DNA from: Neoechinorhynchus agilis
Lineage: Eukaryota > Animalia > Acanthocephala
NCBI GenBank assembly: GCA_051530055.1
Contig: JBMGUZ010000023.1
Span: 1-35,166, forward strand
Length of the DNA stretch: 35,166 nt
Direction of reading: 5' to 3'
Position 1 is the stretch's first letter. Each line of letters opens with the position of its first letter. Shown here piece by piece: positions 4,064 to 25,133 of the stretch. The notes below the pieces were generated by a model. That model was not told where the DNA came from, did not search any database, and saw only the letters and a program-made list of their open reading frames with translations. The position numbers and the translations under genes were made by a program.

Positions 4064-4755
4064 ATGTCTACGGAGCCTTCCTTTTCCTGTCGACTTCCTC
4101 GTCCACAGGAGCCGATCTTTTCCGCGGTTTTGTGTGACCAAAAGAATATTAAACTGCCGCATTCGATTATATTAGAAGGCACTTCGGTTTCCGCCAATGA
4201 GAGAAACGGAGAACCATAAATAGCATCGTGCATTGGGCATTATTCTGAACAGCAAGCGCGGAGTGTTATGGAAAAACTGCGCTTTTGCTCTAAACGAAGA
4301 AATTTTTGTTTTTAAAAGTCCCGATTTTTGTAGCGAAGAGCATGTAAGAAATTTAAACCATCTTGGATAAAATGGAAGCTCAATCGGTATTTGTTTTAGA
4401 GTAATCTTTGAAATGGTTTTAAGTTTATGAGTGCTGTGAACTCGAGTTGTAGGCAAAAAATCTGTTCTTGATTCGTTACAAAATCAGTAATAAAAATTTG
4501 AATAATAATCGAAATGCCGCAGCGCTCAGAGATATCCGAGAAGGGCCATCCGAAGAAGTTGTTGATAAAGAGCAAGGATTTTATGAACAATGTTACAATG
4601 TTTTTCACAAAAAGGCGTTCCCATTCTATGAAACAATCGACTATATGCGGGATTTTTGCAATATAATTGGAATTCAAGCCAGAAAAACTTTCCTGATTTC
4701 AAGGAAACACTCGACGAATTGTTGCGGCGAAAGTGTGATTGTTAATGCGATTTAG
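4064..4755 (+). pseudogene. Coding-like sequence of unknown family, interrupted by stops or unresolved introns
   Basis: ATG 4064 reads MSTEPSFSCRLPRPQEPIF...GEP* and continues in a protein-like frame. ORF 4468-4755 follows. No recognisable motif. Confidence 0.25.
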
Positions 4756-5539
4756 AAACAATTGAAACGGGGAAAACAAGGGAGCAAACTTATATGAGCT
4801 TTTATATTTACATTCAAGCGATAGGAAGACCAAATCTGTGTTTATAAGTAAAAATTAGATGTTTCAAAGAATCTAAAAATAAATGTATAAGCATTTTGTA
4901 TCGAAAATAGACAAGTCTTGATTTTCAGAGGCTACGAGGTTAAGAAAAAATTAACTGGACGGAACATGGATTTGTAACGAACAAATTTAAACAAAGCATT
5001 GCAATCGCTTTAATCGGTGTCGCCGAAACGTGATTTCTGTCTGGTGCTCTGAATGTTAAAGTGAAGAAACTCATTGAGGCGCAAGGAAACGACGGACGTA
5101 ATTATGAATTTCTCAGCAGCTTTGCGATATGGTCATGCTCTCCCTAAAAATTCCTTTCTGTGATGGGACCCTTCAATCAAATCCTCAACGAGAGAATAAG
5201 CGAAATTTTCAAAATGCTTGGTTTGTACTTTTGGTAAAATTCAACGTTTTTAAATGTTCATACAAATTTCATCGTCGCACTTTAATTTTTTAATCATTTT
5301 AAAGATTTCAAACTCTCTGAAATAATCTGCCTGTTGATTATCAAGAACATAATAATCGAAATTATAGCAGCGATTTTATATTTATGAGGCGCTAAAACGG
5401 AATAAAAACATGTAATTAAAGCCAGAATTCGATAATCCAACTTTAACGTAAGACTCAAAACTGTGTAATAATTTTATTTACAGAAAACACAGAAACTCTT
5501 GCAGCGTTTTAAGCAGCATTAAAAATCGAACAAACTCGC

Positions 5540-6711
5540 CTAGTTGTTCAGTTGCGAGTCGTCCATTGTATTGGCGTCTTCGCCATTTTGTTCATTCGTT
5601 GTATCCACTGATTCTTCGTTTGATTTTTCAAAGACCAACAAATGCGATAAAGATTTTTCCAATGGTTTCAATCCATACGACTTTTTAATCGATAGCTTCA
5701 CCACAAATGATTGTCGCGAAACGTCGTAGCCAATAATCTTTGCGATTAGTCGTTCCTTTTGTGCGAATCGAGTGTCCATTTGCCGAAACCGATACTCTAA
5801 CGGTCCTTGAGCCATTTCTTTAGTTGAACATCCATCCAAATGACACTTAAAAATCGTCTTTCGAATAGCGAGTATCGATGGGGAAGCAACGTAGCACATT
5901 AATTTAGAAACAAACCGTATCTTTCCGGAATCTACTTCTTCGACAAGAAATCTATGACCCTGGTCCTCCAGGATCTTTACTCTTTTGAATGATTTATCGG
6001 AATCTTTGACGAGACAATAATGGCCAGGATAAAGTTCTCTCGATACCTCCTCAGCATGACGTCCATTTAAATTAATCAATTCTCGATTCAGATAAGTTCG
6101 CCATTCCTGGACCATTGGGTTATAAAAATATTTTCAATGTTGCAGAAGTGCACCAGCTTATAAATAATTTCGATATTAATCAAATATTTGCCGTCCTCGT
6201 CCTTTCTTATAAAATCACAAAAGACAGTCCCTTCAAATGCTGCCTCAGGAACTTGTGAGTGGTTTTGATTTGCAAGTACGGAATTGCCATCTTGGTTTTC
6301 CAATTTCAGTTTACATGGAAGGGCCAGCCTTGGAATGGAGTTGAAGATTCTTTTAACCGGTCGTAGATTTACTAATGGAAGCCACTCTTGGTGACCGTAA
6401 TCAATGTAAAAGACTTTGAATGAAGATGTCAGAATATTCACTTCTGTAATTTGACCTCGGTACCACTTTCCGTCCACAAGGGACTTGCCAATACATTTGG
6501 AATTAAGACCATACACAAGAAATTGATTGAAACGAAGAGATTCATAAACATTTCGTAGACCGATCTCAAGATCCAATCGATTTTTGAAGATTAAATTTGG
6601 TAGAAGGTAAATATTTTGAGTATTATCCATGTAACTGACTTGACAATAGACTGAATCTTGTAGAGAAACTATAAACTGCGGGTAATCCGCTGGAGGTACA
6701 AAAGTGCTCAT
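5540..6711 (-). CDS. Two-domain extended-Tudor (TDRD-like) protein, copy A, with a net -1 frameshift near 6113
   Basis: DGKWYRGQI...KVFYIDYGHQE...IPRLALPCKL is an extended Tudor signature, and a second degenerate Tudor follows. CAATGGTCCAG here versus CAATTTGTCCAG in copy B splits it into ORFs 6088-6711 and 5540-6115. Confidence 0.85.
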
Positions 6712-6851
6712 TATTGATGATTTTCTGTAAGAATAATTTTAGTCAAGAAGCCGATCTAACTGTATACTTTCAAAGATAGAAGCAATATAAAGCTTTTGAG
6801 TGAAAAGAATTAGGGGGGTACTCTATCTTGCTAAGCGTTATAAAATTTCAG

Positions 6852-6859
6852 CCAATCAG
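6852..6859. promoter_or_regulatory. CCAAT box (CCAATCAG) upstream of the Tudor gene; same element at 9184-9191 in copy B
   Basis: Exact CCAATCAG ~140 nt upstream of the ATG. The same 8-mer lies upstream of Six (29985-29992, reverse) and of the dynein gene (32763, 33102). NF-Y role is inferred. Confidence 0.5.
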
Positions 6860-7869
6860 CGTGTGCATAACAGCGGGGCACCGGTATAAAATAGGAAATA
6901 AACCCTAAAAATAATTAATCATCACGTGCCGCTTTTTTTAACCGTGTAATGGACGCTTTATCTTTGAATTTAATTATATATTTTGTTTGAATTACTAATT
7001 TGTTTTACACCCTTTGGATTTTTATATCATCACCAGGTTGTTATTTTAAGCGATTTCTGTAGAAGTTATTTAAATTATCATTTTATTTAATTATTTGCTC
7101 AAATGGTGCATATAAATTGCTTTCTTTATTTTTAAGGGTAAGTATCAATTTCAATAGTGAGAATAAATGGCATGAGACTCTTATCTTAAATGTGTGATTT
7201 TGTTTCTCATTTTTAAAACGGTCTCCAGCTGTGAATTGCATGCTGATTGGCTTAATTTTCAATATGGCAAGCAATAATCCTCAAAAAAAATTAACTGGAC
7301 GAAACATGGATTTGTAACGAACAAATTTAAAAGCATTGCGATAGCTTTAATCGGTGTCGCCGAAACGTGATTTCTGTCTGGTGCTCTGAAGTGAAGAAAC
7401 TCATTGAGGCGCAAGGAAACGACGGACGTAATTATGAATTTCTCAGCAGCTTTGCGATATGGTCCTGCTCTCCCTAAAAATTCCTTTCTGTGATGGGACC
7501 CTTCAATCAAATCCTCAACGAGAGAATAAGCGAAATTTTCAAAATGCTTGGTTTGTGCTTTTGGTAAAATTCAACGTTTTTAAATGTTCATACAAGTTTC
7601 ATCGTCGCTCTCTAATTTTTTAATCATTTTAAAGATTTCAAACTCTCTGAAATAATCTGCCTGTTGATTATCAAGAACATAATAATCGAAATTATAGCAG
7701 CGATTTTATATTTATGAGGCGCTAAAACGGAATAAAAACATGTAATTAAAGCCAGAATTCGATAATCCAACTTTAACGTAAGACTCAAAACTGTGTAATA
7801 ATTTTATTTACAGAAAACACAGAAACTCTTGCAGCGTTTTAAGCAGCATTAAAACTCGAACAAACTCGC

Positions 7870-9043
7870 CTAGTTGTTCAGTTGCGAGTCGTCCATTGTA
7901 TTGGCGTCTTCGCCATTTTGTTCATTCGTTGTATCCACTGATTCTTCGTTTGATTTTTCAAAGACCAACAAATGCGATAAAGATTTTTCCAATGGTTTCA
8001 ATCCATACGACTTTTTAATCGATAGCTTCACCACAAATGATTGTCGCGAAACGTCGTAGCCAATAATCTATGGCGATTAGTCGTTCCTTTTGTGCGAATC
8101 GAGTGTCCATTTGCCGAAACCGATACTCTAACGGTCCTTGAGCCATTTCTTTAGTTGAACACCCATCCAAATGACACTTAAAAATCGTCTTTCGAATAGC
8201 GAGTATCGATGGAGAAGCAACGTAGCATATTAATTTAGAAACAAACCGTATCTTTCCGGAATCTACTTCTTCGACAAGAAATCTATGACCCTGGTCCTCC
8301 AGGATCTTTACTCTTTTGAATGATTTATCGGAATCTTTGACGAGACAATAATGGCCAGGATAAAGTTCTCTCGATACCTCCTCAGCGTGACGTCCATTTG
8401 AATTAATTAATTCTCGATTCAGATAAGTTCGCCATTCCTGGACAAATTGGGTTATAAAAATATTTTCAATGTTGCAGAAGTGAACCAGCTTATAAATAAT
8501 TTCGATATTAATCAAATATTTGCCGTCCTCGTCCTTTCTCATAAAATCACAAAAGACATTCCCTTCAAACGCTGCCTCGGGAACTTGTGAGTAGTTTTGA
8601 TTTGCAAGTACGGAATTGCCATCTTGGTTTTCCAATTTCAATTTACATGGAAGGGCCAGCCTTGGAATGGAGTTGAAGATTCTTTTAACCGGTCGTAGAT
8701 TTACCAATGGAAGCCACTCTTGGTGACCGTAATCAATGTAAAAGACTTTGAATGAAGATGTCAGAATATTCACTTCTGTAATTTGACCCCGGTACCACTG
8801 TCCGTCCACAAGGGACTTGCCAATACATTTGGAATTAAGACCATACACAAGAAATTGATTGAAACGAAGAGATTCATAAACATTTCGTAGACCGATCTCA
8901 AGATCCAATCGATTTTTGAAGATTAAATTTGGTAGAAGGTAAATATTTTGAGTATTATCCATGTAACTGACTTGACAATAGACTGAATCTTGTAGAGAAA
9001 CTATAAACTGCGGGTAATCCGCTGGAGGTACAAAAGTGCTCAT
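7870..9043 (-). CDS. Two-domain extended-Tudor (TDRD-like) protein, copy B, with a +1 frameshift near 8072
   Basis: 342-aa ORF 8015-9043 covers both Tudor domains. GCCATAGATT versus GCAAAGATT in copy A shifts the C-terminus. The corrected CDS is 1173 nt (390 aa), ending at TAG 7870-7872. Confidence 0.87.
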
Positions 9044-10094
9044 TATTGATGATTTTCTGTAGGAATAATTTTAGTCAAGAAGCCGATCTAACTGTATACT
9101 TTCAAAGATAGAAGCAATATAAAGCTTTTGAGTGAAAAGAATAAAGGGGATACTTTATCTTGCTAAGCGTTATAAAATTTCAGCCAATCAGCGTGTGCAT
9201 TGCAGCGGAGCACAGGTGTAAAATAGGAAATAAACCCTAAAGATAATTAATCATCACGTGCCGCTTTTTTTAACAGTGTAATGGACGCTTTATCTTTGAA
9301 TTTAATTATATATTTTGTTTGAATTGCTAATTTGTTTTACACCCTTTGGATTTTTATATCATCACCAGGTTGTTATTTTAAGCGATTTCTGTAGAAGTTA
9401 TTTAAATTATCATTTTATTTAATTATTTGCTAAAATGGTGCGTATAAATTGCTTTCTTTATTTTTAAGGGTAAGTATCAATTTCAATAGTGAGAATAAAT
9501 GGCATGAGACTCTTATCTTAAATGTGTGATTTTGTTTCTCATTCTTAAAACGGCATCCAGCTGTGAATTGCATGCTGATTGGCTTAATTTTCAATATGGC
9601 ATGCAATAATCCTCAAAAAAAAATTAACTGGACGAAACATGGATTTGTAACGAACAAATTTAAAAGAAGCATTGCGATAGCTTTAATCGGTGTCGCCGAA
9701 ACGTGATTTCTGTCTGGTGCTCTGAATGTTAAAGTGAAGAAACTCATTGAACGTTAGGAAACGATGCTGCTCCGAGACTTAGACTTTCGAGGAAGATAAA
9801 AGAAGTCTCGCTAAATTACGACACTTCAAACTCACGAAAAAATAGAGAAACTCAACGTCGCAATGTACGAAATAAAGAGAAGACTTTATATAAATGATTA
9901 TTACGTTTGATGAAGTTCAAATCAAAGTGATTTTGGAAACATTTTAACGCTGAAAAACTTTGTGAGTGGATTTCGATGTTTTCGCCGCAACAAAACTAAA
10001 AAAGTGACTAACAGCTTTAAGCCGAAGACAGCGATTAAGTTCGTTACAAATCGCGCAAGTTGATGGCCATAACATCCAATAAACACTGTGAGCT

Positions 10095-12222
10095 TTAGTA
10101 TTTATTTCGCAAAACCGCCGGTACGGTGAGTTCTTCGCCCGCTAACAAATCTTGAACGGTGAAAAGAGCCAATGTTTGCCTTTCCGTTCCATTAGATTTA
10201 AAGTGAACCTTCTGAACGAACAAATTGGGATTGCTCTGAGAGCGATGAAAAATATGAGACACGTTGGTGATCGACGCTACGTTTCCATTTCTCTCCTTAT
10301 CGCTGTCCAGTTGACAAACAAAATAACCCTTTGGAAGATCGTGGTTCACACGGACACCCAATCTTTTAGTTCTATGAACAAATACCTCCAAATAAGCTCG
10401 AATTCCTTGGCTGACCAATGTGTTTGGACAGTGCCCTGGACATTTACACGCATCGCCACATTCTTGAACTCCTCGTGGAATTCCACCTTCGGGCAATCTC
10501 AAATATTCGTAAGTATTTTGCTTCGAAGTCAGTGTGTTTTCTAAACTAAAATGCTCGCAAACCGGAGAAATGTAATGTAAATGAAGCATACGAAAAACTC
10601 GAATATGGATCTGTGAATTTAAGATTTAAATAATCAATCTTTACGATTGCTTTACGTAGATCCTTTTTTAGTTTAGGTAAAATATCTTAGATTCTACGAT
10701 AAAAAAACGAATTTCATTCTTAAATAGATCTGTAAATTTTCTGAAGGTATCAATTATTGCATTTTAGTATCCGGCAATTCTTCAAAATTAACGTAGAATT
10801 CAATGGGAAGTTTAATCCATGGTGCGAATTGCATTTGTTTAGACTAAACGCCACTCTTTTAAACTCGCCTAACGCCAACATTTGAGAGCATTTCTAGGTA
10901 TCAAATTTGGCGAAACTTGCGAGGATCCTGGTAGACGATAGAAAACATTCACATCAAAATGACAACGATGCTCATTGCAGAGTGGAATTTCTTTTCTTTC
11001 CAGACCATTCGAAATATCTTTATCCACGACATTTTTCCCGCTTCCAGCGTACTCATAATCGATGTCCACATTTTCTTGGAAAGTAAATAAATCGATCGAT
11101 AAATGTGACCTTGTCGTTTCCAACTGTTCGAAAACTTGACGGATTTTGTAGAATGATCGAAAACAAGGCGATACGTAGACAACTTTTTTGGTCGTCCCGG
11201 TTCGATTTATCATGCGTTTCCAACCGTAGATTAAAAGGAATGTGAAACGGATTGAATGGTCGTCTGTCGTTCAATAGATCAATAACACCAGGTCGTCCGT
11301 CCGTATAGATCAAATCAATCAATGGAGCGCATTTAAAGGAGCAGATATGGTCGTTTGATTTTATTCTTGCTTCCGGAAACATCATTCTATGCCGGGCGCC
11401 TAATCGTTTCAATGTATCAACATAATCAAATCTCACTCTGGATGAAGAAAGCTCTGATCGATGCCTCGGTTTCGGCAACAAATTCTCGTTTGTTGGTTTA
11501 CAAGGATCGTCCATAATGCAAACACAGTCAGTAGAAGTTTCGCTTTCATTCAAACTTTGTTGGTCGGAAAGCGGAAACATAATTTCTTCTTTTTTGCTTT
11601 TGAATAATGATTGAATCATTCGTATTCTATGGGAACCACGAAACACCCAAACCGGAGTTTCATTCTCAACACTAACCAGCATCATTGATCCATCAACTTC
11701 ATTCACAATGGCATTTCTCCATTGATCCGATTGCTCAGCCATGAATTCTAATTTAGAACCAATTGTAACTGCGATCAGTAGACGATTTTGAGTGAAATAC
11801 AGACTAAGGAATATCTCGAATTCATCAGGTAGGCGCGATAAGTGAACCGGAATTCTCATTTTTCCACAGCACGTCCTAATTTGGGAGACGTGGACGTATT
11901 TGGCGAATCCATTAAGGAAAAAAACCAAATATCGATAACTATTCAGGGCGTTTGGGAGTTCCGCAATAACTGCATCGCCCATTTCATTGTATTCATCCGT
12001 TTGAACAACACAGCGAGTCTCATGACTGTGCTGTGGCCATGATTCGTCAGTTGGAACGTTTATCTGATCAACTGCAACAAGAACATTACTTACCCGAATA
12101 TCACAATGCTTCTTGTAATTTGGAAGGATACTCAAGACCTCTGACCCCTTGAAAGTGCACTTAAAGTCCACGTCGTAATCCGTCATTATCATCGGATCAA
12201 ATGGTCGCTTAGATGACATCAT
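10095..12222 (-). CDS. SETDB1: SETDB1/eggless-like protein (Tudor domains, MBD, partial pre-SET, degenerate SET)
   Basis: AELPNALNSYRYLVFFLNGFAKYV and EVDGSMM...WVFRGSHRI match the SETDB1 Tudor region. GWKRM..VYVSPC..IDLFTF is an MBD. DISNGLE is the pre-SET start. ECGDACKC..CPNTLVSQG..LEVF..GVR..DLPKGYFVC..PNLFVQ..LAGEELT is a SET domain. One extra T in run 11233-11236 breaks PLIYGW. Structure at 10610-10870 is unresolved. Confidence 0.9.
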
Positions 12223-12474
12223 CTATAAAATATGAGATGAAGGGTTTTTTAAGCGTTGGTGGTTAATAAGTGGCTATCTTATTCTTGGACTCTTATTCTT
12301 TTGATTTTTTTGATAATTTCTGCAAATTGCATTCTAAGAAAAACAACCAATAAAAAGCGATCTCACAGAAACCAAAACCACGTCGCATTTACAAATAATT
12401 TTTCGTTAAACAAAAAATTGTTAATAAAATCCAAGTTCTGCTTGATTAGTTAAATTCACTTTGCAGCGGCCACC

Positions 12475-13031: not shown

Positions 13032-15343
13032 TTAACCCCAGGGATGCTGTTTTTTCAATCCGTTAAATATCAGTCTTTCAATTTCCTTATCAAGTTCCTT
13101 GCTTCGCCTTTTGTTTGCCTTTATGGCCGTCACAGTTTCCACGTAATTCTGGAAATAAAGAATTTTACAGCGCTATCAAGAGAATGTAGCAAACCTTTCG
13201 AACTGCTTCGGTATACACAGTGAGCATTTCCTTTGTGTTCAACTCTGATAGCTCTTCAGCAGTCATTTTATCGATCTGATCAGCTTTGATTGGACTCTCG
13301 GCAGTAACCAACTCCTTCAATATCAATCTTAGATGTGAACAGAGACCATCTCGTTTTCTTAGAAAGTCATCGTAATCGCTTTGGGTTTCTCCATTTGATG
13401 CATTGGCGGATTCCTCGGGTTTATGATCAACAATTTGTTGTTCAGACACCCTTGGTTCACTTTTGACCGCAATAATTTCCTTCTTTGGTACTACTTCCAC
13501 TTTCTTTTTTGATGGGGACCTTTTAGCCGGTGCTTCCTTATCCTTTTCATTCTTCTTATGAGCAATTAAACCACGTTGGATATCCATCCCGATAGTCATT
13601 GCATTACAGTTCGCTTGGCGTGGATCTGGATGCATTCTACATTCCCAATCGATCGAAAGTCTTTCATTTAGATCCAGTGAACCTAATGGAAGTACACGCC
13701 ACTTTAAACATTTATCACATTGAACCGCAATCTTCAGCTTCTTATTTCTTCGTTCCACAAACTCGGGTTCGTTTCTTGGCTCCAATTCTCTACTCCAATC
13801 ATTGTTCAAACAATATCCATATCGCTGCCAAAACATATTCTGATCTTCTTTATAGTATCCAATATCAGTTACATAACTGGTCATAAAGTCATAGAGAACT
13901 TTAAGAAGATATCGATACTCTCGCCCATGAGCAAAATTCTGTTTATTATGCATCGGTTCAATAATGGTCGGTGGAAGGTTTACGACAGCGACCACGCCGG
14001 GGAACGAGATATTGCAAGTGTTTGAACCTGGATAAGACCTTTCGTACATACGAATCAATCGATTAGCATTGTAAACAAACGCACCGTCTCGTCTTCTATT
14101 CTGGATATTAACACCGAAATGAAATTTAATCTCCATTGGGCAATTCAATATTGTCTGACGCTGTTCAACTTGCATTCTACAAGATACTCTGGCTCATGAA
14201 GACTAGCTCAGAATTTCTTTTTACGTTTTAAGACTACTTTTTGTTGATCATCTAGTAATAGTTTTAATTTGCCCGTCTCAAAGGACAAATCTTCCTTATT
14301 CGCTTCATTTTGATTTAACTCATCTATTTTCTTTTCGGTATCAAGAGCTCGTTCCTCGGCGAGTTTCAATTCATTCTTAGCAAAATACAACTCCTTTTCA
14401 GCTCTTTTCCGAAATCTATCGGAATTGTAGATGTATTCACGGGGTTCATAGAGAGTATAGATGATTCGTGTACTCCTTACTTTCTTTCCTTGAATTGTCA
14501 GTCTCATTGATGGATTGTAGTAGAGAATAGAGACATAATGTCGAAGAGATCGTCGTTCAGGACAAAGTGCCAAATCTTCTAACGTATTACCTGGATTTGC
14601 AATTAAAATATCATTCTTTTGCGAACTAATGTCAAGCTCAGTGGTTCCGGTTGAAACGAGTTTAAGATTGTAGACAACAATCAAAGTCCCGGAACTTCCT
14701 TGTATTTTGTCGAATTGAGCCATAAAATTCGTTGTGTCATAAGGGCTATATTGGTAAATTATGTTCATTTCAAAGTTGTGAATAAGAAGCGATTTTCCAT
14801 CATTGAGTACGGGTTGAAGTGTCGATGCATCGAAAACTGGAAGAGGAACAACTACTTGTTCAATTCCTTCACTCTCATGGAACGTTCGAGAAAGCATCAG
14901 ACAAGACAGTAACCCGTCTTTTTTGGTGAACAATAACATATCGTTACCTATCCTCATCGTGCCTGATTTAAGACCATTTCCATATTGACCGATTGCTTGC
15001 AAGTTCGTTGAACGTTTTGTTGATTTACCGAACGATACAACTCCCATTGTCTCCGATGGGTTCATTCCACATCCATTGTCAAGAAAACACAAGGAAAAAC
15101 CTCCTCTTACCGAACAATGCAACTCAGTGTAAATGTGAAGGTCGGTAGATTGAGCATCCAGAGAATTATCTATCAGCTCAGCCATGGCACCAAATAAAAA
15201 CTCATGAGTTGTCCTGTAAATCAAAATATTATAAAACATTTTCAGAGTTTAGAGACCTACGAGTTTGAATGAAGGTATTCTATGGTCAATTGAGCTTTGT
15301 GAAGCATTGCATATCGGTCTCGAATTCGAAATTTTGACTCCAT
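13032..15343 (-). CDS. MORC2: MORC1/2-type GHKL ATPase with coiled-coil insertion and CW zinc finger; 4 exons
   Basis: Exon 1 15261-15343 reads MESKFRIRDRYAMLHKAQLTIEYLHSNS. A 47-nt intron (15214-15260) joins it to TTHEFLFGAMAELIDNSLDA. GHKL motifs DNGCGM, GQYGNGLKSG and GTLIVVYNL are intact. CW finger QCDKCLKWR..W.C.MHPDP..C. A 46-nt intron (13149-13194) leads to a last exon ending TAA 13032-13034 overlapping AATAAA. The junction at 14161-14237 is ambiguous. Confidence 0.95.
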
Positions 15344-15375
15344 TCCCTAAGTCTAGAAAAAATGAATTAAGGTCT

Positions 15376-18300
15376 CGACTTCCAGTTTTGCCATGGGGCC
15401 GAGATCCGGGATTAGGCGACCGGATCTCGTCGGTAACACTCGAAGGGGTCCTCATCCAGACGAATCCGAGGCGGTCAATGTCAGCGATTTAAATAGACTT
15501 TCCCGTTGTGGAAAACTCTAAAATAGCTAACATGCCAGTTGGGATTTCGAGATTCCTTACGCCCTGAACTTTAGTAAGCGAAAAAAGGGGAACTTTGGTG
15601 GTAGTCCTCAACGGTGATCCAGAATCCACCGAGATTGGGACCACCGCAACCGTCAATCTCCACCATCTTTCGAACTTCCAGTTTTGCCATGGGGCCGAGA
15701 TCTGAGATTAGGCGACAGGATCTCGTCGGTAACACTCGAAGGGGTCCTCATCCAGACGAATCCGAGGCGGTCAATGTCAGCGATTTAAATAGACTTTCCC
15801 GTTGTGGAAAACTCTAAAATAGCTAACATGCCAGTTGGGATTTCGAGATTCCTTACGCCCTGAACTTTAGTAAGCGAAAAAAAGGGGAACTTTGGTGGTA
15901 GTCCTCAACGGTGATCCAGAATCCACCGAGATTGGGACCACCGCAACCGTCAATCTCCACCATCTTTCGAACTTCCAGTTTTGCCATGGGGCCGAGATCT
16001 GGGATTAGGCGACCGGATCTCGTCGGTAACACTCGAAGGGGTCCTCATCCAGACGAATCCGAGGCGGTCAATGTCAGCGATTTAAATAGACTTTCCCGTT
16101 GTGGAAAACTCTAAAATAGCTAACATGCCAGTTGGGATTTCGAGATTCCTTACGCCCTGAACTTTAGTAAGCGAAAAAAGGGGAACTTTGGTGGTAGTCC
16201 TCAACGGTGATCCAGAATCCACCGAGATTGGGACCACCGCAACCGTCAATCTCCACCATCTTTCGAACTTCCATTTTGCCATGGGGCCGAGATCTGAGAT
16301 TAGGCGACCGGATCTCGTCGGTAACACTCGAAGGGGTCCTCATCCAGACGAATCCGAGGCGGTCAATGTCAGCGATTTAAATAGACTTTCCCGTTGTGGA
16401 AAACTCTAAAATAGCTAACATGCCAGTTGGGATTTCGAGATTCCTTACGCCCTGAACTTTAGTAAGCGAAAAAAGGGGAACTTTGGTGGTAGTCCTCAAC
16501 GGTGATCCAGAATCCACCGAGATTGGGACCACCGCAACCGTCAATCTCCACCATCTTTCGAACTTCCAGTTTTGCCATGGGGCCGAGATCTGGGATTAGG
16601 CGACCGGATCTCGTCGGTAACACTCGAAGGGGTCCTCATCCAGACGAATCCGAGGCGGTCAATGTCAGCGATTTAAATAGACTTTCCCGTTGTGGAAAAC
16701 TCTAAAATAGCTAACATGCCAGTTGGGATTTCGAGATTCCTTACGCCCTGAACTTTAGTAAGCGAAAAAAGGGGAACTTTGGTGGATCCTCAACGGTGAT
16801 CCAGAATCCACCGAGATTGGGACCACCGCAACCGTCAATCTCCACCATCTTTCGAACTTCCAGTTTTGCCATGGGGCCGAGATCTGGAATTAGGCGACAG
16901 GATCTCGTCGGTAACACTCGAAGGGGTCCTCATCCAGACGAATCCGAGGCGGTCAATGTCAGCGATTTAAATAGACTTTCCCGTTGTGGAAAACTCTAAA
17001 ATAGCTAACATGCCAGTTGGGATTTCGAGATTCCTTACGCCCTGAACTTTAGTAAGCGAAAAAAAGGGAACTTTGGTGGTAGTCCTCAACGGTGATCCAG
17101 AATCCACCGAGATTGGGACCACCGCAACCGTCAATCTCCACCATCTTTCGAACTTCCATTTTGCCACGGGGCCGAGATCTGAGATTAGGCGACAGGATCT
17201 CGTCGGTAACACTCGAAGGGGTCCTCATCCAGACGAATCCGAGGCGGTCAATGTCAGCGATTTAAATCAACTTTCCCGTTGTGGAAAACTCTAAAATAGC
17301 TAACATGCCAGTTGGGATTTCGAGATTCCTACGCCCTGAACTTTAGTAAGCGAAAAAAGGGGAACTTTGGTGGTAGTCCTCAACGGTGATCCAGAATCCA
17401 CCGAGATTGGGACCACCGCAACCGTCAATCTCCACCATCTTTCGAACTTCCAGTTTTGCCATGGGGCCGAGATCTGAGATTAGGCGACCGGATCTCGTCG
17501 GTAACACTCGAAGGGGTCCTCATCCAGACGAATCGAGGCGGTCAATGTCAGCGATTTAAATAGACTTTCCCGTTGTGGAAAACTCTAAAATAGCTAACAT
17601 GCCAGTTGGGATTTCGAGATTCCTTACGCCCTGAACTTTAGTAAGCGAAAAAAGGGGAACTTTGGTGGTAGTCCTCAACGGTGATCCAGAATCCACCGAG
17701 ATTGGGACCACCGCAACCGTCAATCTCCACCATCTTTCGAACTTCCATTTTGCCACGGGGCCGAGATCTGAGATTAGGCGACCGAATCTCGTCGGTAACA
17801 CTCGAAGGGGTCCTCATCCAGACGAATCCGAGGCGGTCAATGTCAGCGATTTAAATAGACTTTCCCGTTGTGGAAAACTCTAAAATAGCTAACATGCCAG
17901 TTGGGATTTCGAGATTCCTTACGCCCTGAACTTTAGTAAGCGAAAAAAGGGGAACTTTGGTGGTAGTCCTCAACGGTGATCCAGAATCCACCGAGATTGG
18001 GACCACCGCAACCGTCAATCTCCACCATCTTTCGAACTTCCAGTTTTGCCATGGGGCCGAGATCTGGGATTAGGCGACAGGATCTCGTCGGTAACACTCG
18101 AAGGGGTCCTCATCCAGACGAATCCGAGGCGGTCAATGTCAGCGATTTAAATAGACTTTCCCGTTGTGGAAAACTCTAAAATAGCTAACATGCCAGTTGG
18201 GATTTCGAGATTCCTTACGCCCTGAACTTTAGTAAGCGAAAAAAGGGGAACTTTGGTGGTAGTCCTCAACGGTGATCCAGAATCCACCGAGATTGGGACC

Positions 18301-21300
18301 ACCGCAACCGTCAATCTCCACCATCTTTCGAACTTCCAGTTTTGCCATGGGGCCGAGATCTGGGATTAGGCGACGGATCTCGTCGGTAACAATCCAGACG
18401 AATCCGAGGCGGTCAATGTCAGCGATTTAAATAGACTTTCCCGTTGTGGAAAACTCTAAAATAGCTAACATGCCAGTTGGGATTTCGAGATTCCTTACGC
18501 CCTGAACTTTAGTAAGCGAAAAAAGGGGAACTTTGGTGGTAGTCCTCAACGGTGATCCAGAATCCACCGAGATTGGGACCACCGCAACCGTCAATCTCCA
18601 CCATCTTTCGAACTTCCAGTTTTGCCATGGGGCCGAGATCTGGAATTAGGGGACAGGATCTCGTCGGTAACACTCGAAGGGGTCCTCATCCAGACGAATC
18701 CGAGGCGGTCAATGTCAGCGATTTAAATAGACTTTCCCGTTGTGGAAAACTCTAAAATAGCTAACATGCCAGTTGGGATTTCGAGATTCCTTACGCCCTG
18801 AACTTTAGTAAGCGAAAAAAAGGGAACTTTGGTGGTAGTCCTCAACGGTGATCCAGAATCCACCGAGATTGGGACCACCGCAACCGTCAATCTCCACCAT
18901 CTTTCGAACTTCCAGTTTTGCCATGGGGCCGAGATCTGAGATTAGGCGACAGGATCTCGTCGGTAACACTCGAAGGGGTCCTCATCCAGACGAATCCGAG
19001 GCGGTCAATGTCAGCGATTTAAATCAACTTTCCCGTTGTGGAAAACTCTAAAATAGCTAACATGCCAGTTGGGATTTCGAGATTCCTTACGCCCTGAACT
19101 TAGTAAGCGAAAAAAAGGGAACTTTGGTGGTAGTCCTCAACGGTGATCCAGAATCCACCGAGATTGGGACCACCGCAACCGTCAATCTCCACCATCTTGA
19201 ACAGTTTTGCCATGGGGCCGAGATCTGAGATTAGGGGACGAATCTCGTCGGTAACAATCCAGACGAATCCGAGGCGGTCAATGTCAGCGATTTAAATAGA
19301 CTTTCCCGTTGTGGAAAACTCTAAAATAGCTAACATGCCAGTTGGGATTTCGAGATTCCTTACGCCCTGAACTTTAGTAAGCGAAAAAGGAACTTTGGTG
19401 GTAGTCCTCAACGGTGATCCAGAATCCACCGAGATTGGGACCACCGCAACCGTCAATCTCCACCATCTTTCGAACTTCCAGTTTAGCCACGGGGCCGAGA
19501 TCTGAGATTAGGCGACGAATCTCGTCGGTAACAATCCAGACGAATCCGAGGCGGTCAATGTCAGCGATTTAAATAGACTTTCCCGTTGTGGAAAACTCTA
19601 AAATAGCTAACATGCCAGTTGGGATTTCGAGATTCCTTACGCCCTGAACTTTAGTAAGCGAAAAAAGGGGAACTTTGGTGGTAGTCCTCAACGGTGATCC
19701 AGAATCCACCGAGATTGGGACCACCGCAACCGTCAATCTCCACCATCTTTCGAACTTCCAGTTTTGCCATGGGGCCGAGATCTGGGATTAGGCGACAGGA
19801 TCTCGTCGGTAACACTCGAAGGGGTCCTCATCCAGACGAATCCGAGGCGGTCAATGTCACGATTTAAATAGACTTTCCCGTTGTGGAAAACTCTAAAATA
19901 GCTAACATGCCAGTTGGGATTTCGAGATTCCTTACGCCCTGAACTTTAGTAAGCGAAAAAAAGGGAACTTTGGTGGTAGTCCTCAACGGTGATCCAGAAT
20001 CCACCGAGATTGGGACCACCGCAACCGTCAATCTCCACCATCTTTCGAACTTCCAGTTTTGCCATGGGGCCGAGATCTGGAATTGGGGACAGGATCTCGT
20101 CGGTAACACTCGAAGGGTCCTCATCAGACGAATCCGAGGCGGTCAATGTCAGCGATTTAAATAGACTTTCCCGTTGTGGAAAACTCTAAAAAAACATGCC
20201 AGTTGGGATTTCGAGATTCCTTACGCCCTGAACTTTAGTAAGCGAAAAAAGGGGAACTTTGGTGGTAGTCCTCAACGGTGATCCAGAATCCACCGAGATT
20301 GGGACCACCGCAACCGTCAATCTCCACCATCTTTCGAACTTCCAGTTTTGCCACGGGGCCGAGATCTGAGATTAGGCGACCGAATCTCGTCGGTAACACT
20401 CGAAGGGGTCCTCATCCAGACGAATCCGAGGCGGTCAATGTCAGCGATTTAAATAGACTTTCCCGTTGTGGAAAACTCTAAAATAGCTAACATGCCAGTT
20501 GGGATTTCGAGATTCCTTACGCCCTGAACTTTAGTAAGCGAAAAAAAGGGGAACTTTGGTGGTAGTCCTCAACGGTGATCCAGAATCCACCGAGATTGGG
20601 ACCACCGCAACCGTCAATCTCCACCATCTTTCGAACTTCCAGTTTTGCCACGGGGCCGAGATCTGAGATTAGGCGACCGAATCTCGTCGGTAACACTCGA
20701 AGGGGTCCTCATCCAGACGAATCCGAGGCGGTCAATGTCAGCGATTTAAATAGACTTTCCCGTTGTGGAAAACTCTAAAATAGCTAACATGCCAGTTGGG
20801 ATTTCGAGATTCCTTACGCCCTGAACTTTAGTAAGCGAAAAAAGGGGAACTTTGGTGGTAGTCCTCAACGGTGATCCAGAATCCACCGAGATTGGGACCA
20901 CCGCAACCGTCAATCTCCACCATCTTTCGAACTTCCAGTTTTGCCATGGGGCCGAGATCTGGAATTAGGGGACAGGATCTCGTCGGTAACACTCGAAGGG
21001 GTCCTCATCCAGACGAATCCGAGGCGGTCAATGTCAGCGATTTAAATAGACTTTCCCGTTGTGGAAAACTCTAAAATAGCTAACATGCCAGTTGGGATTT
21101 GGAGATTCCTTACGCCCTGAACTTTAGTAAGCGAAAAAAGGGGAACTTTGGTGGTAGTCCTCAACGGTGATCCAGAATCCACCGAGATTGGGACCACCGC
21201 AACCGTCAATCTCCACCATCTTTCGAACTTCCAGTTTTGCCATGGGGCCGAGATCTGAGATTAGGCGACGAATCTCGTCGGTAACAATCCAGACGAATCC

Positions 21301-22110
21301 GAGGCGGTCAATGTCAGCGATTTAAATAGACTTTCCCGTTGTGGAAAACTAAAATAGCTAACATGCCAGTTGGGATTTCGAGATTCCTTACGCCCTGAAC
21401 TTTAGTAAGCGAAAAAAAGGGAACTTTGGTGGTAGTCCTCAACGGTGATCCAGAATCCACCGAGATTGGGACCACCGCAACCGTCAATCTCCACCATCTT
21501 TCGAACTTCCAGTTTTGCCACGGGGCCGAGATCTGAGATTAGGCGACGAATCTCGTCGGTAACAATCCAGACGAATCCGAGGCGGTCAATGTCAGCGATT
21601 TAAATCAACTTTCCCGTTGTGGAAAACTCTAAAATAGCTAACATGCCAGTTGGGATTTCGAGATTCCTTACGCCCTGAACTTTAGTAAGCGAAAAAAGGG
21701 AACTTTGGTGGTAGTCCTCAACGTGATCCAGAATCCACCGAGATTGGGACCACCGCAACCGTCAATCTCCACCATCTTTCGAACTTCCAGTTTGCCAGGG
21801 GCCGAGATCTGAGATTAGGCGACGATCTCGTCGGTAACAATCCAGACGAATCCGAGGCGGTCAATGTCAGCGATTTAAATAACTTTCCCGTTGTGGAAAA
21901 CTCTAAAATAGCTAACATGCCAGTTGGGATTTGGAGATTCCTTACGCCCTGAACTTTAGTAAGCGAAAAAAGGGGAACTTTGGTGGTAGTCCTCAACGGT
22001 GATCCAGAATCCACCGAGATTGGGACCACCGCAACCGTCAATCTCCACCATCTTTCGAACTTCCAGTTTTGCCACGGGGCCGAGATCTGAGATTAGGGGA
22101 CCGAATCTCG
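15376..22110. repeat. Tandem satellite-like array, ~296 bp unit (a ~280 bp deletion subfamily also present), ~23 units
   Basis: The gcca(t/c)gggg anchor recurs 24 times from ~15390 to ~22070. Units are near-identical, differing mainly in an A/G run, a few SNPs and a 16-nt deletion variant. GC content is visibly higher than the flanks. Confidence 0.99.
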
Positions 22111-23424: not shown

Positions 23425-24199
23425 ATGTCTCGCGATGGGGTCGTCCGAGCTGGACTGTTGGCAGTTTCAACACGAGAATCTGGGGCGTGGTTGGAGGCTG
23501 TTCCTCTGGCATCAGTGGGAACTCTTCTTACTGACGAGGTAACGAGGATCGCAGTATCCTTAAGACTCGGTCTCCCGATATGCACGTCCCATCGCTGTCG
23601 ATGTGGGTCTTTGGTTGATGCTTTCGGGCGACACGGTCTCGTCTGCAGAAGGTCAGCAGGAAGGTTTTCACGCCATTCTGAAATCAATAACGCAATTTCT
23701 CGGGCGTTGAGAACGGCGAACTTCCCCAACATCTTGGAACCCGGAAATCTTTGTCGACTAGACGACCGTAGGCCCGACGGAATTCCGGTCTTCCCGTTGC
23801 GGGAGGGCAAATGCCTTCTCTAGGACGCCACGTCCCTCGCAGCCAGCAACATCCGCCACTCCCTCGAAATCGCCGGTGGTGCCGCCAGTGCAGCGGAAGG
23901 GAGGAAAATACGGAAATATCTTCACTTATCGAGGGCTCACTATTTTGTCCCCTTTGGGGTAGAGACGTATGGAGCGCTCGGCAGCTCGGCACTCTGCTCC
24001 AGGATCTCTCGAAGAAATTGAGAGAGGCAACCGGAGACTCAAGAGCATGCGTATTCCTTCGAAAAAATATCTTGCTGGCAGTACAAAGAGGCAATGCTGC
24101 CAGCGTGATGGCGACGGTCGAGGAAGGACAAAAGCTGGAATTCGGCGGGAGGTGGTGAGTGTGTTAATTGTCGAGAAATGAAGATTGATTGAAAAAAAA
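23425..24199 (+). mobile_element. 3' fragment of a CRE-clade-like non-LTR retrotransposon (post-RT region, zinc knuckle, RLE), short A tail
   Basis: GAWLEAVP..LRLGLPIC..HRCRCG..DAFGRHGLVC..GRFSRHSEIN..RRPDG..KCLL*DAT..YFVPFGVETYG..LAVQRGN. A W-to-stop change at 23821 and a later frameshift. A8 at 24192-24199. Confidence 0.9.
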
Positions 24200-24366: not shown

Positions 24367-24922
24367 TCACCGCTGGTGCAAAGGACTAAGCACGGGGAGC
24401 GAAGAGCCGTGGTTCCTTTGAAGGCAATCGCTGAGCAATCCCGTAAATGCTATGGCGACCAGATATCGCGCACCATTAGGGATCCGTTTCAGGACGTTCC
24501 TGGGCAGAAACCGCACGATATCAGGTATCGAAATAAAATCAGCGGTGATCTGAGGGGTCTCAGGCACAAAAAGGTTCGGTTAATTATGGTGGAGAACCAG
24601 ACCCACTACAGCGGAGATCCCGGGGACCATGGACAAACAAAACCCCCAAATTGGTTAATTTAAAAGACCTACCGCAAACCGGACACAAACCAGTAGAAAC
24701 GCAAGGGAGCCCGCCATCGTTGGTCTTCTCTTCAGCAGCGTCGATTGTAGGCGATTTGAACACATTGTGACGTAATTTGGAATTTCGGCAAAACCTATCC
24801 GATGCTGAGATCGTCCTGAGCCTTCTTGGAGGTATAGGGCTGGGACGTGAATCTGATCCGTCGCAATATCCATCGTCGCGTTTAAAAGAATTGATTGATT
24901 CCGATTGGTTTCGAAGGCACAA
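24367..24922 (-). mobile_element. 5' fragment of a CRE-like element (N-terminal zinc finger and pre-RT region), decayed
   Basis: CPVCGRSFKLT..LFVHGPRDLRCSGSG zinc finger, then a shifted frame with VLKRIPNGARYLVA, a motif I recall preceding the RT in this group. Breaks off before the RT. Confidence 0.65.
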
Positions 24923-25133
24923 CCTTTTACGCCGTTAAGATTGTTTAAGTGTTTTATTCACAGAAAAGTTCATATTTCTTTGTTATTCCGTATTTTCTCG
25001 TTTTTATTGCTTCCGTTCATCTGAGAAGATCCTCTAACGCTAAGAATATGGCTACCGGGTTCAATTATTGGCATTCGGCATCTTCAAAAGCTCTTTTCAG
25101 AGAAGCGCTGGAGTATTGAAAGCATTCAACCAA

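Follow-up and report, generated by a model that had tools for sequence, protein, structure and literature searches.

Trans-splicing of a spliced leader (SL) is known in bdelloid rotifers and was not found in expressed sequence tags of Brachionus (PMC1925144). The bdelloid SL, as it is quoted in PMC1925144 and PMC3795323, is a 23-nt sequence, GGCTTATTACAACTTACCAAGAG (Pouchkina-Stantcheva & Tunnacliffe 2005). Acanthocephalans are close relatives of bdelloids, and we found no report of SL trans-splicing in Acanthocephala in the literature that we searched. Here we describe a locus of the acanthocephalan Neoechinorhynchus agilis at which a 6.7-kb tandem array lies directly upstream of a gene for a MORC-type ATPase. 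The locus is contained in a stretch of 35,166 nt, hereafter the window (assembly GCA_051530055.1, contig JBMGUZ010000023.1, positions 1 to 35,166). Taken as a whole, the probable explanation is that a local array stands upstream of an expressed MORC gene whose mRNA is SL trans-spliced, with the array in the outron and promoter zone. The RNA contigs on which this explanation is based are the first direct sign of SL trans-splicing in acanthocephalans.

Several described systems share one or another property with this locus. In the outrons of Caenorhabditis elegans SL1 genes, the sequence between the transcription start and the acceptor is discarded and promoter-proximal DNA is missing from the mRNA. 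In dinoflagellates, relic spliced leaders occur in genomic retrocopies through the reverse transcription of trans-spliced RNAs, a process called mRNA recycling. MORC proteins silence repeats in other organisms, and tandem repeats at promoters are silenced with MORC/GHKL ATPases, as at SDC and FWA with AtMORC1/6 in Arabidopsis and at D4Z4 with SMCHD1 in humans.

The MORC2-like coding sequence occupies positions 13032-15343 of the minus strand, where four coding exons encode a product of 724 amino acids (aa) that ends at a TAA stop codon (13034-13032), a structure derived from contig joints in two RNA runs, Pfam matches, translation and alignment. Read and contig evidence from DNA and RNA runs covers one stretch of 2691 nt. 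Coding exon 1 (15261-15343) begins with an ATG at 15343-15341, which is supported both by RNA contig pieces and by N-terminal alignment with MORC2-like proteins. Three short minus-strand introns, at 15214-15260 (47 nt, GT..AG), 14178-14221 (44 nt) and 13149-13194 (46 nt), are spliced out in the MORC contigs of both RNA runs, that is, X2 record 9 (2775 nt, k-mer depth 127) and X4 record 13 (2295 nt, depth 141). The open reading frames (ORFs) match HATPase_c_3 (3.9e-22) and zf-CW (5.8e-13), both above the cut-off; Morc6_S5 scores 36.7 bits on the second ORF against a cut-off of 26.2 and narrowly misses it on the first (26.0). The product thus has the GHKL ATPase, the S5-fold and the CW zinc finger of a MORC ATPase. 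Its identity is 48% with a second N. agilis MORC (P0004, ACOME3_008233) and 42-45% with a Pomphorhynchus laevis MORC and a Tubulanus MORC2-like protein (45% for Tubulanus). The window MORC is therefore an intact, well-expressed MORC2-like paralogue, and the prospect that this copy might not be expressed, raised in an earlier reading made from the sequence alone (hereafter the sequence-only reading), is not borne out at depths of 127-141 in two RNA runs. Among representative proteins, the MORC ATPase exon as query found only P0004 and MORCs that are more distant, and with P0004 as query the window MORC did not come up among public N. agilis proteins; it seems to be unannotated or fragmented in GCA_051530055.1. 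A separate observation concerns intron 2 (window 14177-14224, minus strand), from which exactly 44 nt are removed in the RNA contigs of both runs and which shows GT..AG in no register. Its best register is GTAAAA...TATCTT, the canonical GT..AG pair would span 48 nt and break the frame, and the DNA runs are without an indel in this region; the intron possibly uses a non-canonical acceptor.

The evidence for trans-splicing comes from the 5′ end of the MORC mRNA. Between the ATG and an AG acceptor, ttttttctag, with its G at 15353, lie the 9 nt of 5′ untranslated region (UTR) that are present in the genome (ACTTAGGGA, 15344-15352, minus strand), exactly as the sequence-only reading had it. The acceptor and its polypyrimidine tract belong to a unique spacer (15353-15377, minus strand), such that the array begins 24 nt upstream of the acceptor, all of them unique, and 34 nt upstream of the ATG. 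Both MORC contigs lose their match to the genome at 15352, the first base past the AG. The X4 contig ends there, and the X2 contig continues from its loose end for 28 nt, AACTAGAATATTTAAAAACTTACAAGCA, which are joined to the 9 nt of genomic UTR. Upstream of the acceptor, the 5′ sequence in the contigs of two runs is thus no longer colinear with the genome, and one of them has 28 extra nucleotides. On neither strand of the window does the leader occur at up to 3 mismatches, in a search that also included shorter cores, and therefore it is not encoded within the 19.8 kb upstream of MORC. No contig joint links the acceptor to array sequence and, given that all units are nearly identical, this speaks against a cis 5′ exon in any unit. 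On these two grounds, the absence of the leader from the array and the lack of an acceptor-array joint, the array was rejected as the source of either the leader or a cis 5′ exon. The sequence-only reading had remarked that no good donor lies at the spacing of 40-49 nt typical here, and the contig joints indeed show no cis donor used from the acceptor into any array unit. It had concluded that either the start site and any 5′ exon lie in or beyond the array or the mRNA is trans-spliced; this choice was sound, and the RNA contigs point to trans-splicing. We favor SL trans-splicing, which is very probably the correct description of the MORC mRNA, given the absence of the leader from the window, its recurrence at other loci, its likeness to the bdelloid SL and the presence of acceptors close to other ATGs. 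We infer that the leader comes from an SL RNA.

The likeness to the bdelloid SL extends over nearly the whole of the latter, with a local alignment score of 17, compared with 8-12 for the SLs of other phyla. In both systems the AG acceptor that receives the short, A/T-rich leader stands a few nucleotides ahead of the ATG, and the two leaders share the core TATT..A(A/C)AACTTAC(C)AAG. They differ in that the N. agilis leader is at least 28 nt long, ends in GCA rather than GAG and departs from the bdelloid SL at several positions. The neighboring SETDB1-like and Tudor genes likewise have acceptors 0-15 nt before their ATGs, and in the second MORC the distance is 11 nt.

Recurrence of the leader was seen in roughly 87 kb of N. 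agilis DNA from outside the window, which includes loci L001 (JBMGUZ010000013.1) and L002 (CM121342.1). The 3′ 17-21 nt of the leader recur with the same end boundary before two unrelated sequences, one in L002 and one in L003. In L002 the junction reads ATATTTAAAAACTCACAAGCA|ATCGCTGAAG on the minus strand at 9599 (20/21 matches to the leader) and TTAAATACTTACAAGCA|ATCGCTGAAG on the plus strand at 9635 (16/17). In L003 it reads TTTAAAAACATACAAGTA|AAAGATTG on the minus strand at 20606 (16/18), at the 5′ end of a retroelement that has a relative at window positions 24367-24930. None of the L002 and L003 copies is followed by GT, and for this reason they are not SL RNA genes; to judge from their sequences, they look like reverse-transcribed copies of leader-capped RNAs. 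As with the relic SLs of dinoflagellates, SL sequence would here stand in DNA directly before unrelated sequences; the difference is that N. agilis offers only two independent genomic cases, one of them at a retroelement 5′ end. The setting of the L002 copies is an inverted repeat at 9522-9727, with 94-nt arms of 97.9% identity, an 18-nt spacer and the leader 3′ parts at the inner ends of the arms, and it looks like a palindromic pair of retrocopies from a leader-capped RNA.

The same observations bear on a different possibility, namely that the leader is a first exon spliced in cis from a distance, for example from a transposon-derived promoter, and lies either over 19.8 kb upstream or in sequence missing from the assembly. 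It would agree with the leader having been seen on one mRNA only and with the position of the L002 and L003 copies next to repeat or retroelement sequence. However, the MORC introns measure 44-47 nt, whereas the intron needed here would exceed 19.8 kb and cross several genes on the opposite strand. Furthermore, the genomic copies lack a GT donor, the same leader boundary precedes three unrelated sequences, and the leader resembles the bdelloid SL. We therefore consider a remote exon improbable and retain SL trans-splicing.

Several points weigh against this preference for trans-splicing. A single contig of a single run supplies the leader sequence, the X4 contig showing only the break at the acceptor, and the occurrence of the leader on unrelated transcripts amounts to one mRNA plus the 3′ part before two unrelated genomic sequences. 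Both L002 copies belong to one 94-nt inverted repeat, whose arms they form, and hence represent one event; this leader copy continues with ATCG rather than GT, so it is not an SL RNA gene, and the L003 match has 2 mismatches in 18. Neither the window nor the approximately 87 kb of other N. agilis loci shows an SL RNA gene, in which a GT donor and an Sm site would come after the leader. The score of 17 against the bdelloid SL was reached by 316 of 20,000 shuffles (~0.016), which is of modest significance only. Finally, array sequence is present in both RNA runs at a depth of 15-26, summed over about 26 copies, and this could be DNA carry-over, as carry-over and transcription are not separable here.

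A useful by-product of the analysis is a concrete candidate SL sequence for an acanthocephalan. If confirmed, it would extend SL trans-splicing from bdelloids to their parasitic relatives, make the ancestry of the SL in the bdelloid-acanthocephalan clade directly testable and account for the leader-capped retroelement copies in the N. agilis genome. It would also be a warning for annotation, in that the 5′ ends and promoters of N. agilis genes would not be readable from the mRNA.

The array itself (15378-22110, no strand assigned) was found by TRF as a single array with a period of 296, 23.2 copies, 96% matches and a score of 12139, and a separate repeat search gave the same unit register. When it is cut at the unit boundary, the array falls into 23 full units of 275-297 nt, with a truncated last unit of 52 nt (22059-22110). 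The array start near 15376 and the length of 6.7 kb put forward in the sequence-only reading describe a real array, as TRF, the unit split and the reads all show. The units are head-to-tail, non-coding and nearly identical (mean pairwise identity 98.3%, range 96.2-100), and thus form a genuine tandem array. Substitutions are concentrated within the unit's first 50 nt, and six units, mainly distal ones, have a 15-bp deletion in common. The GC content is 49%, compared with about 35% in the flanks, and the CpG observed/expected ratio of 1.06 is similar to that of the remaining window and gives no sign of CpG decay. A repeat protein cannot be encoded by the array, since its 296-bp period is not divisible by 3 and no ORF is longer than 107 aa; nor does any ORF run across units. 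We also considered and rejected an array of structured RNA genes (SL RNA, snRNA, 5S or tRNA), given the lack of an Rfam, tRNA or fold signal and the absence of the leader from the array. Rfam at gathering score gave zero matches in the window (best E = 1.6), a permissive Rfam scan of 15300-16300 produced only chance-level hits (snoR64, 19 bits vs a cut-off of 45), ARAGORN found no tRNA, and the fold z-scores of the unit on the two strands, -0.15 and -1.8, indicate no excess folding energy. Relatives of the unit elsewhere in the window appeared only at E ~1 in an nhmmer search with a unit profile, and blastn of the unit against loci L001-L004 gave no match.

Because the assembly is a hybrid from pooled individuals (PMC12690905), the junction between array and MORC, or the length of the array, might be thought an assembly artefact, the more so as the window locus was not found in the compared parts of GCA_051530055.1. 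The reads argue otherwise. The proximal junction is crossed by a DNA contig (X1 record 2, 14248-15406) that continues 29 nt into the array and ends at the first variable position, and the distal junction sequence, AGGGCTTAGAATCC..., is present as a loose end in eleven X8 DNA reads. Moreover, there is no competing loose end at 15353-15377 among the loose ends listed. The X8 reads cover single-copy MORC sequence at a depth of 17.8 and the array at 460, and the resulting ratio is 25.9, compared with 22.7 assembled unit-equivalents, in a run that is apparently from the published genome project and possibly not independent of the assembly. The check by spanning reads that the sequence-only reading had proposed thus supports both junctions, and an artefact of assembly is extremely unlikely. 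It follows that the array family has about 26 copies genome-wide, nearly all of them at this locus and near the assembled size. The term satellite is apt insofar as the units form a head-to-tail, nearly identical array, but not in the strict sense of an abundant sequence at many loci, since the depth ratio is about 26 and few extra junctions occur elsewhere. These further junctions appear as loose ends, one at 15543 and one at 15643, and 15-16 reads carry each of them. Given the approximate agreement between genome-wide and assembled copy numbers, this is a local array rather than a major satellite; it is young or homogenised, and locus-specific. Among X8 DNA reads placed on 15378-15690, a unit variant, ...GGGGCCGAGATCATGGA..., accounts for about 18% of the unit-to-unit joints (45 vs 197). 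It occurs in none of the 23 assembled units and is present in an X2 RNA contig of the array, which indicates that some copies lie elsewhere or in other individuals.

Trans-splicing accounts only for the missing 5′ exon, and a promoter upstream of 15353 is still required. MORC leads its minus-strand block, and past the array the next genes lie on the plus strand; the MORC pre-mRNA would therefore start upstream of the AG at 15353, in the array or further away. The upstream outron would then be cut away, and a spliced leader that is at least 28 nt long and originates elsewhere in the genome would be joined 9 nt before the ATG, such that the array would fill the promoter and outron space and add nothing to the mature mRNA. 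Of the promoter/5′ UTR position once assigned to the array, the promoter or outron position thus stands, whereas the 5′ UTR does not, there being no array sequence in the mature mRNA. As in C. elegans SL1 outrons, the sequence from the start to the acceptor would be discarded and promoter-proximal DNA would be missing from the mRNA, with the difference that in N. agilis a 6.7-kb tandem array fills this zone.

A candidate core-promoter element, TATTTAAA, is found on the MORC strand at 15488-15495, within the proximal unit and some 140 nt upstream of the acceptor, and recurs in every unit; it is proposed from the sequence alone. We infer that the promoter may lie in the proximal unit or units, in which case TATTTAAA in unit 1 would give an outron of about 110 nt. 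A mechanistic variant of the explanation that we favor, and the minimum that any feedback would need, is that the array carries the MORC promoter as amplified promoter/outron units, with starts in the proximal or in many units and with array chromatin setting the MORC output. The lead position of MORC in its minus-strand block, with the next genes past the array on the plus strand, would fit such an arrangement, as would the mere 24 unique nt between acceptor and array, the repetition of TATTTAAA on the MORC strand in every unit and the presence of array sequence in both RNA runs. However, no RNA contig crosses 15353-15377, the TATA-like word is a palindromic AT-rich octamer that may be due to chance, and a promoter past the array with a 6.8-kb outron is equally allowed. 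We regard a promoter carried by the array as possible, although somewhat doubtful.

The sequence-only reading went further and posited a repeat-sensing feedback, in which MORC-dependent silencing or a change in copy number of the array tunes the expression of MORC itself. The argument for it is one of position, namely an array upstream of MORC and a MORC gene beside a SETDB1-like gene and two Tudor genes, and the X8 unit variant missing from the 23 assembled units hints at array variation between individuals or loci. Yet both RNA runs show MORC to be well expressed despite the array, the locus of the second N. agilis MORC shares the acceptor-before-ATG layout and is without an array, and the family is small, with about 26 copies, a CpG observed/expected ratio of 1.06 and no CpG decay. 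Furthermore, syndermatans are without Dnmt1/3 and retain piRNAs (PMC12256650). Any silencing of the array would therefore have to be histone- or piRNA-based, and a methylation profile, which had been suggested as a read-out, is unlikely to apply. The comparison with the promoter repeats of SDC/FWA and D4Z4 is instructive in this respect: there, too, a tandem array lies at the 5′ end of a gene and a MORC-type ATPase acts on such arrays, but the ATPase gene is elsewhere and silencing has been demonstrated, whereas in N. agilis the downstream gene is MORC itself and is expressed. The feedback is thus unsupported, and we consider it very unlikely. The same low probability applies to its most explicit version, a self-limiting repeat sensor in which the units carry the MORC promoter, the MORC/SETDB1-like/Tudor cluster heterochromatinises the array, and the chromatin or copy number of the array sets the MORC output. 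Nothing indicates that the array controls MORC, and the layout is at present that of an ordinary promoter-proximal tandem repeat.

Downstream of MORC on the same strand lie the SETDB1-like gene, at 12223, where ttttatag abuts the ATG, and a Tudor gene, at 9058, where ttcctacag is located 15 nt before the ATG. The X2 MORC contig extends about 530 nt past 13000 toward the SETDB1-like gene, and the co-oriented MORC/SETDB1-like/Tudor block may be an operon. A Tudor ORF of the window is 98% identical to the N. agilis NCBI protein ACOME3_010472. The 19.8 kb upstream of MORC contain the array, a retroelement fragment and plus-strand genes including Roadblock/LC7-like and SIX-type homeobox ORFs, named from their translations; exact look-ups of the Roadblock ORF and of the SET ORF and a homology search with the Roadblock ORF gave no match.

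Of the other loci, which were sought for a comparison of array length, L002, L003 and L004 are not the window locus, and L001 matches the window only at 4128-11236 and then diverges. The departure at 11236 lies inside the SETDB1-like gene, behind a minisatellite of about 30 bp. Relative to L001 (window 4332-11236), the block with the Tudor gene is tandemly duplicated in the window (7285-9762 and 4940-7419), and these differences indicate a segmental duplication or a haplotype difference. Fragments of a dispersed non-LTR retroelement occur in the window at 23428-24163 (plus strand), 24367-24960 (minus strand) and 1426-2006, with 81-92% identity to the copies of L002 and L003. The fragment on the minus strand, which begins near 24930 with a zinc-finger ORF, is preceded by a degenerate leader-like stretch, and its relative in L003 has a leader-like cap that is clearer than that of the window fragment.

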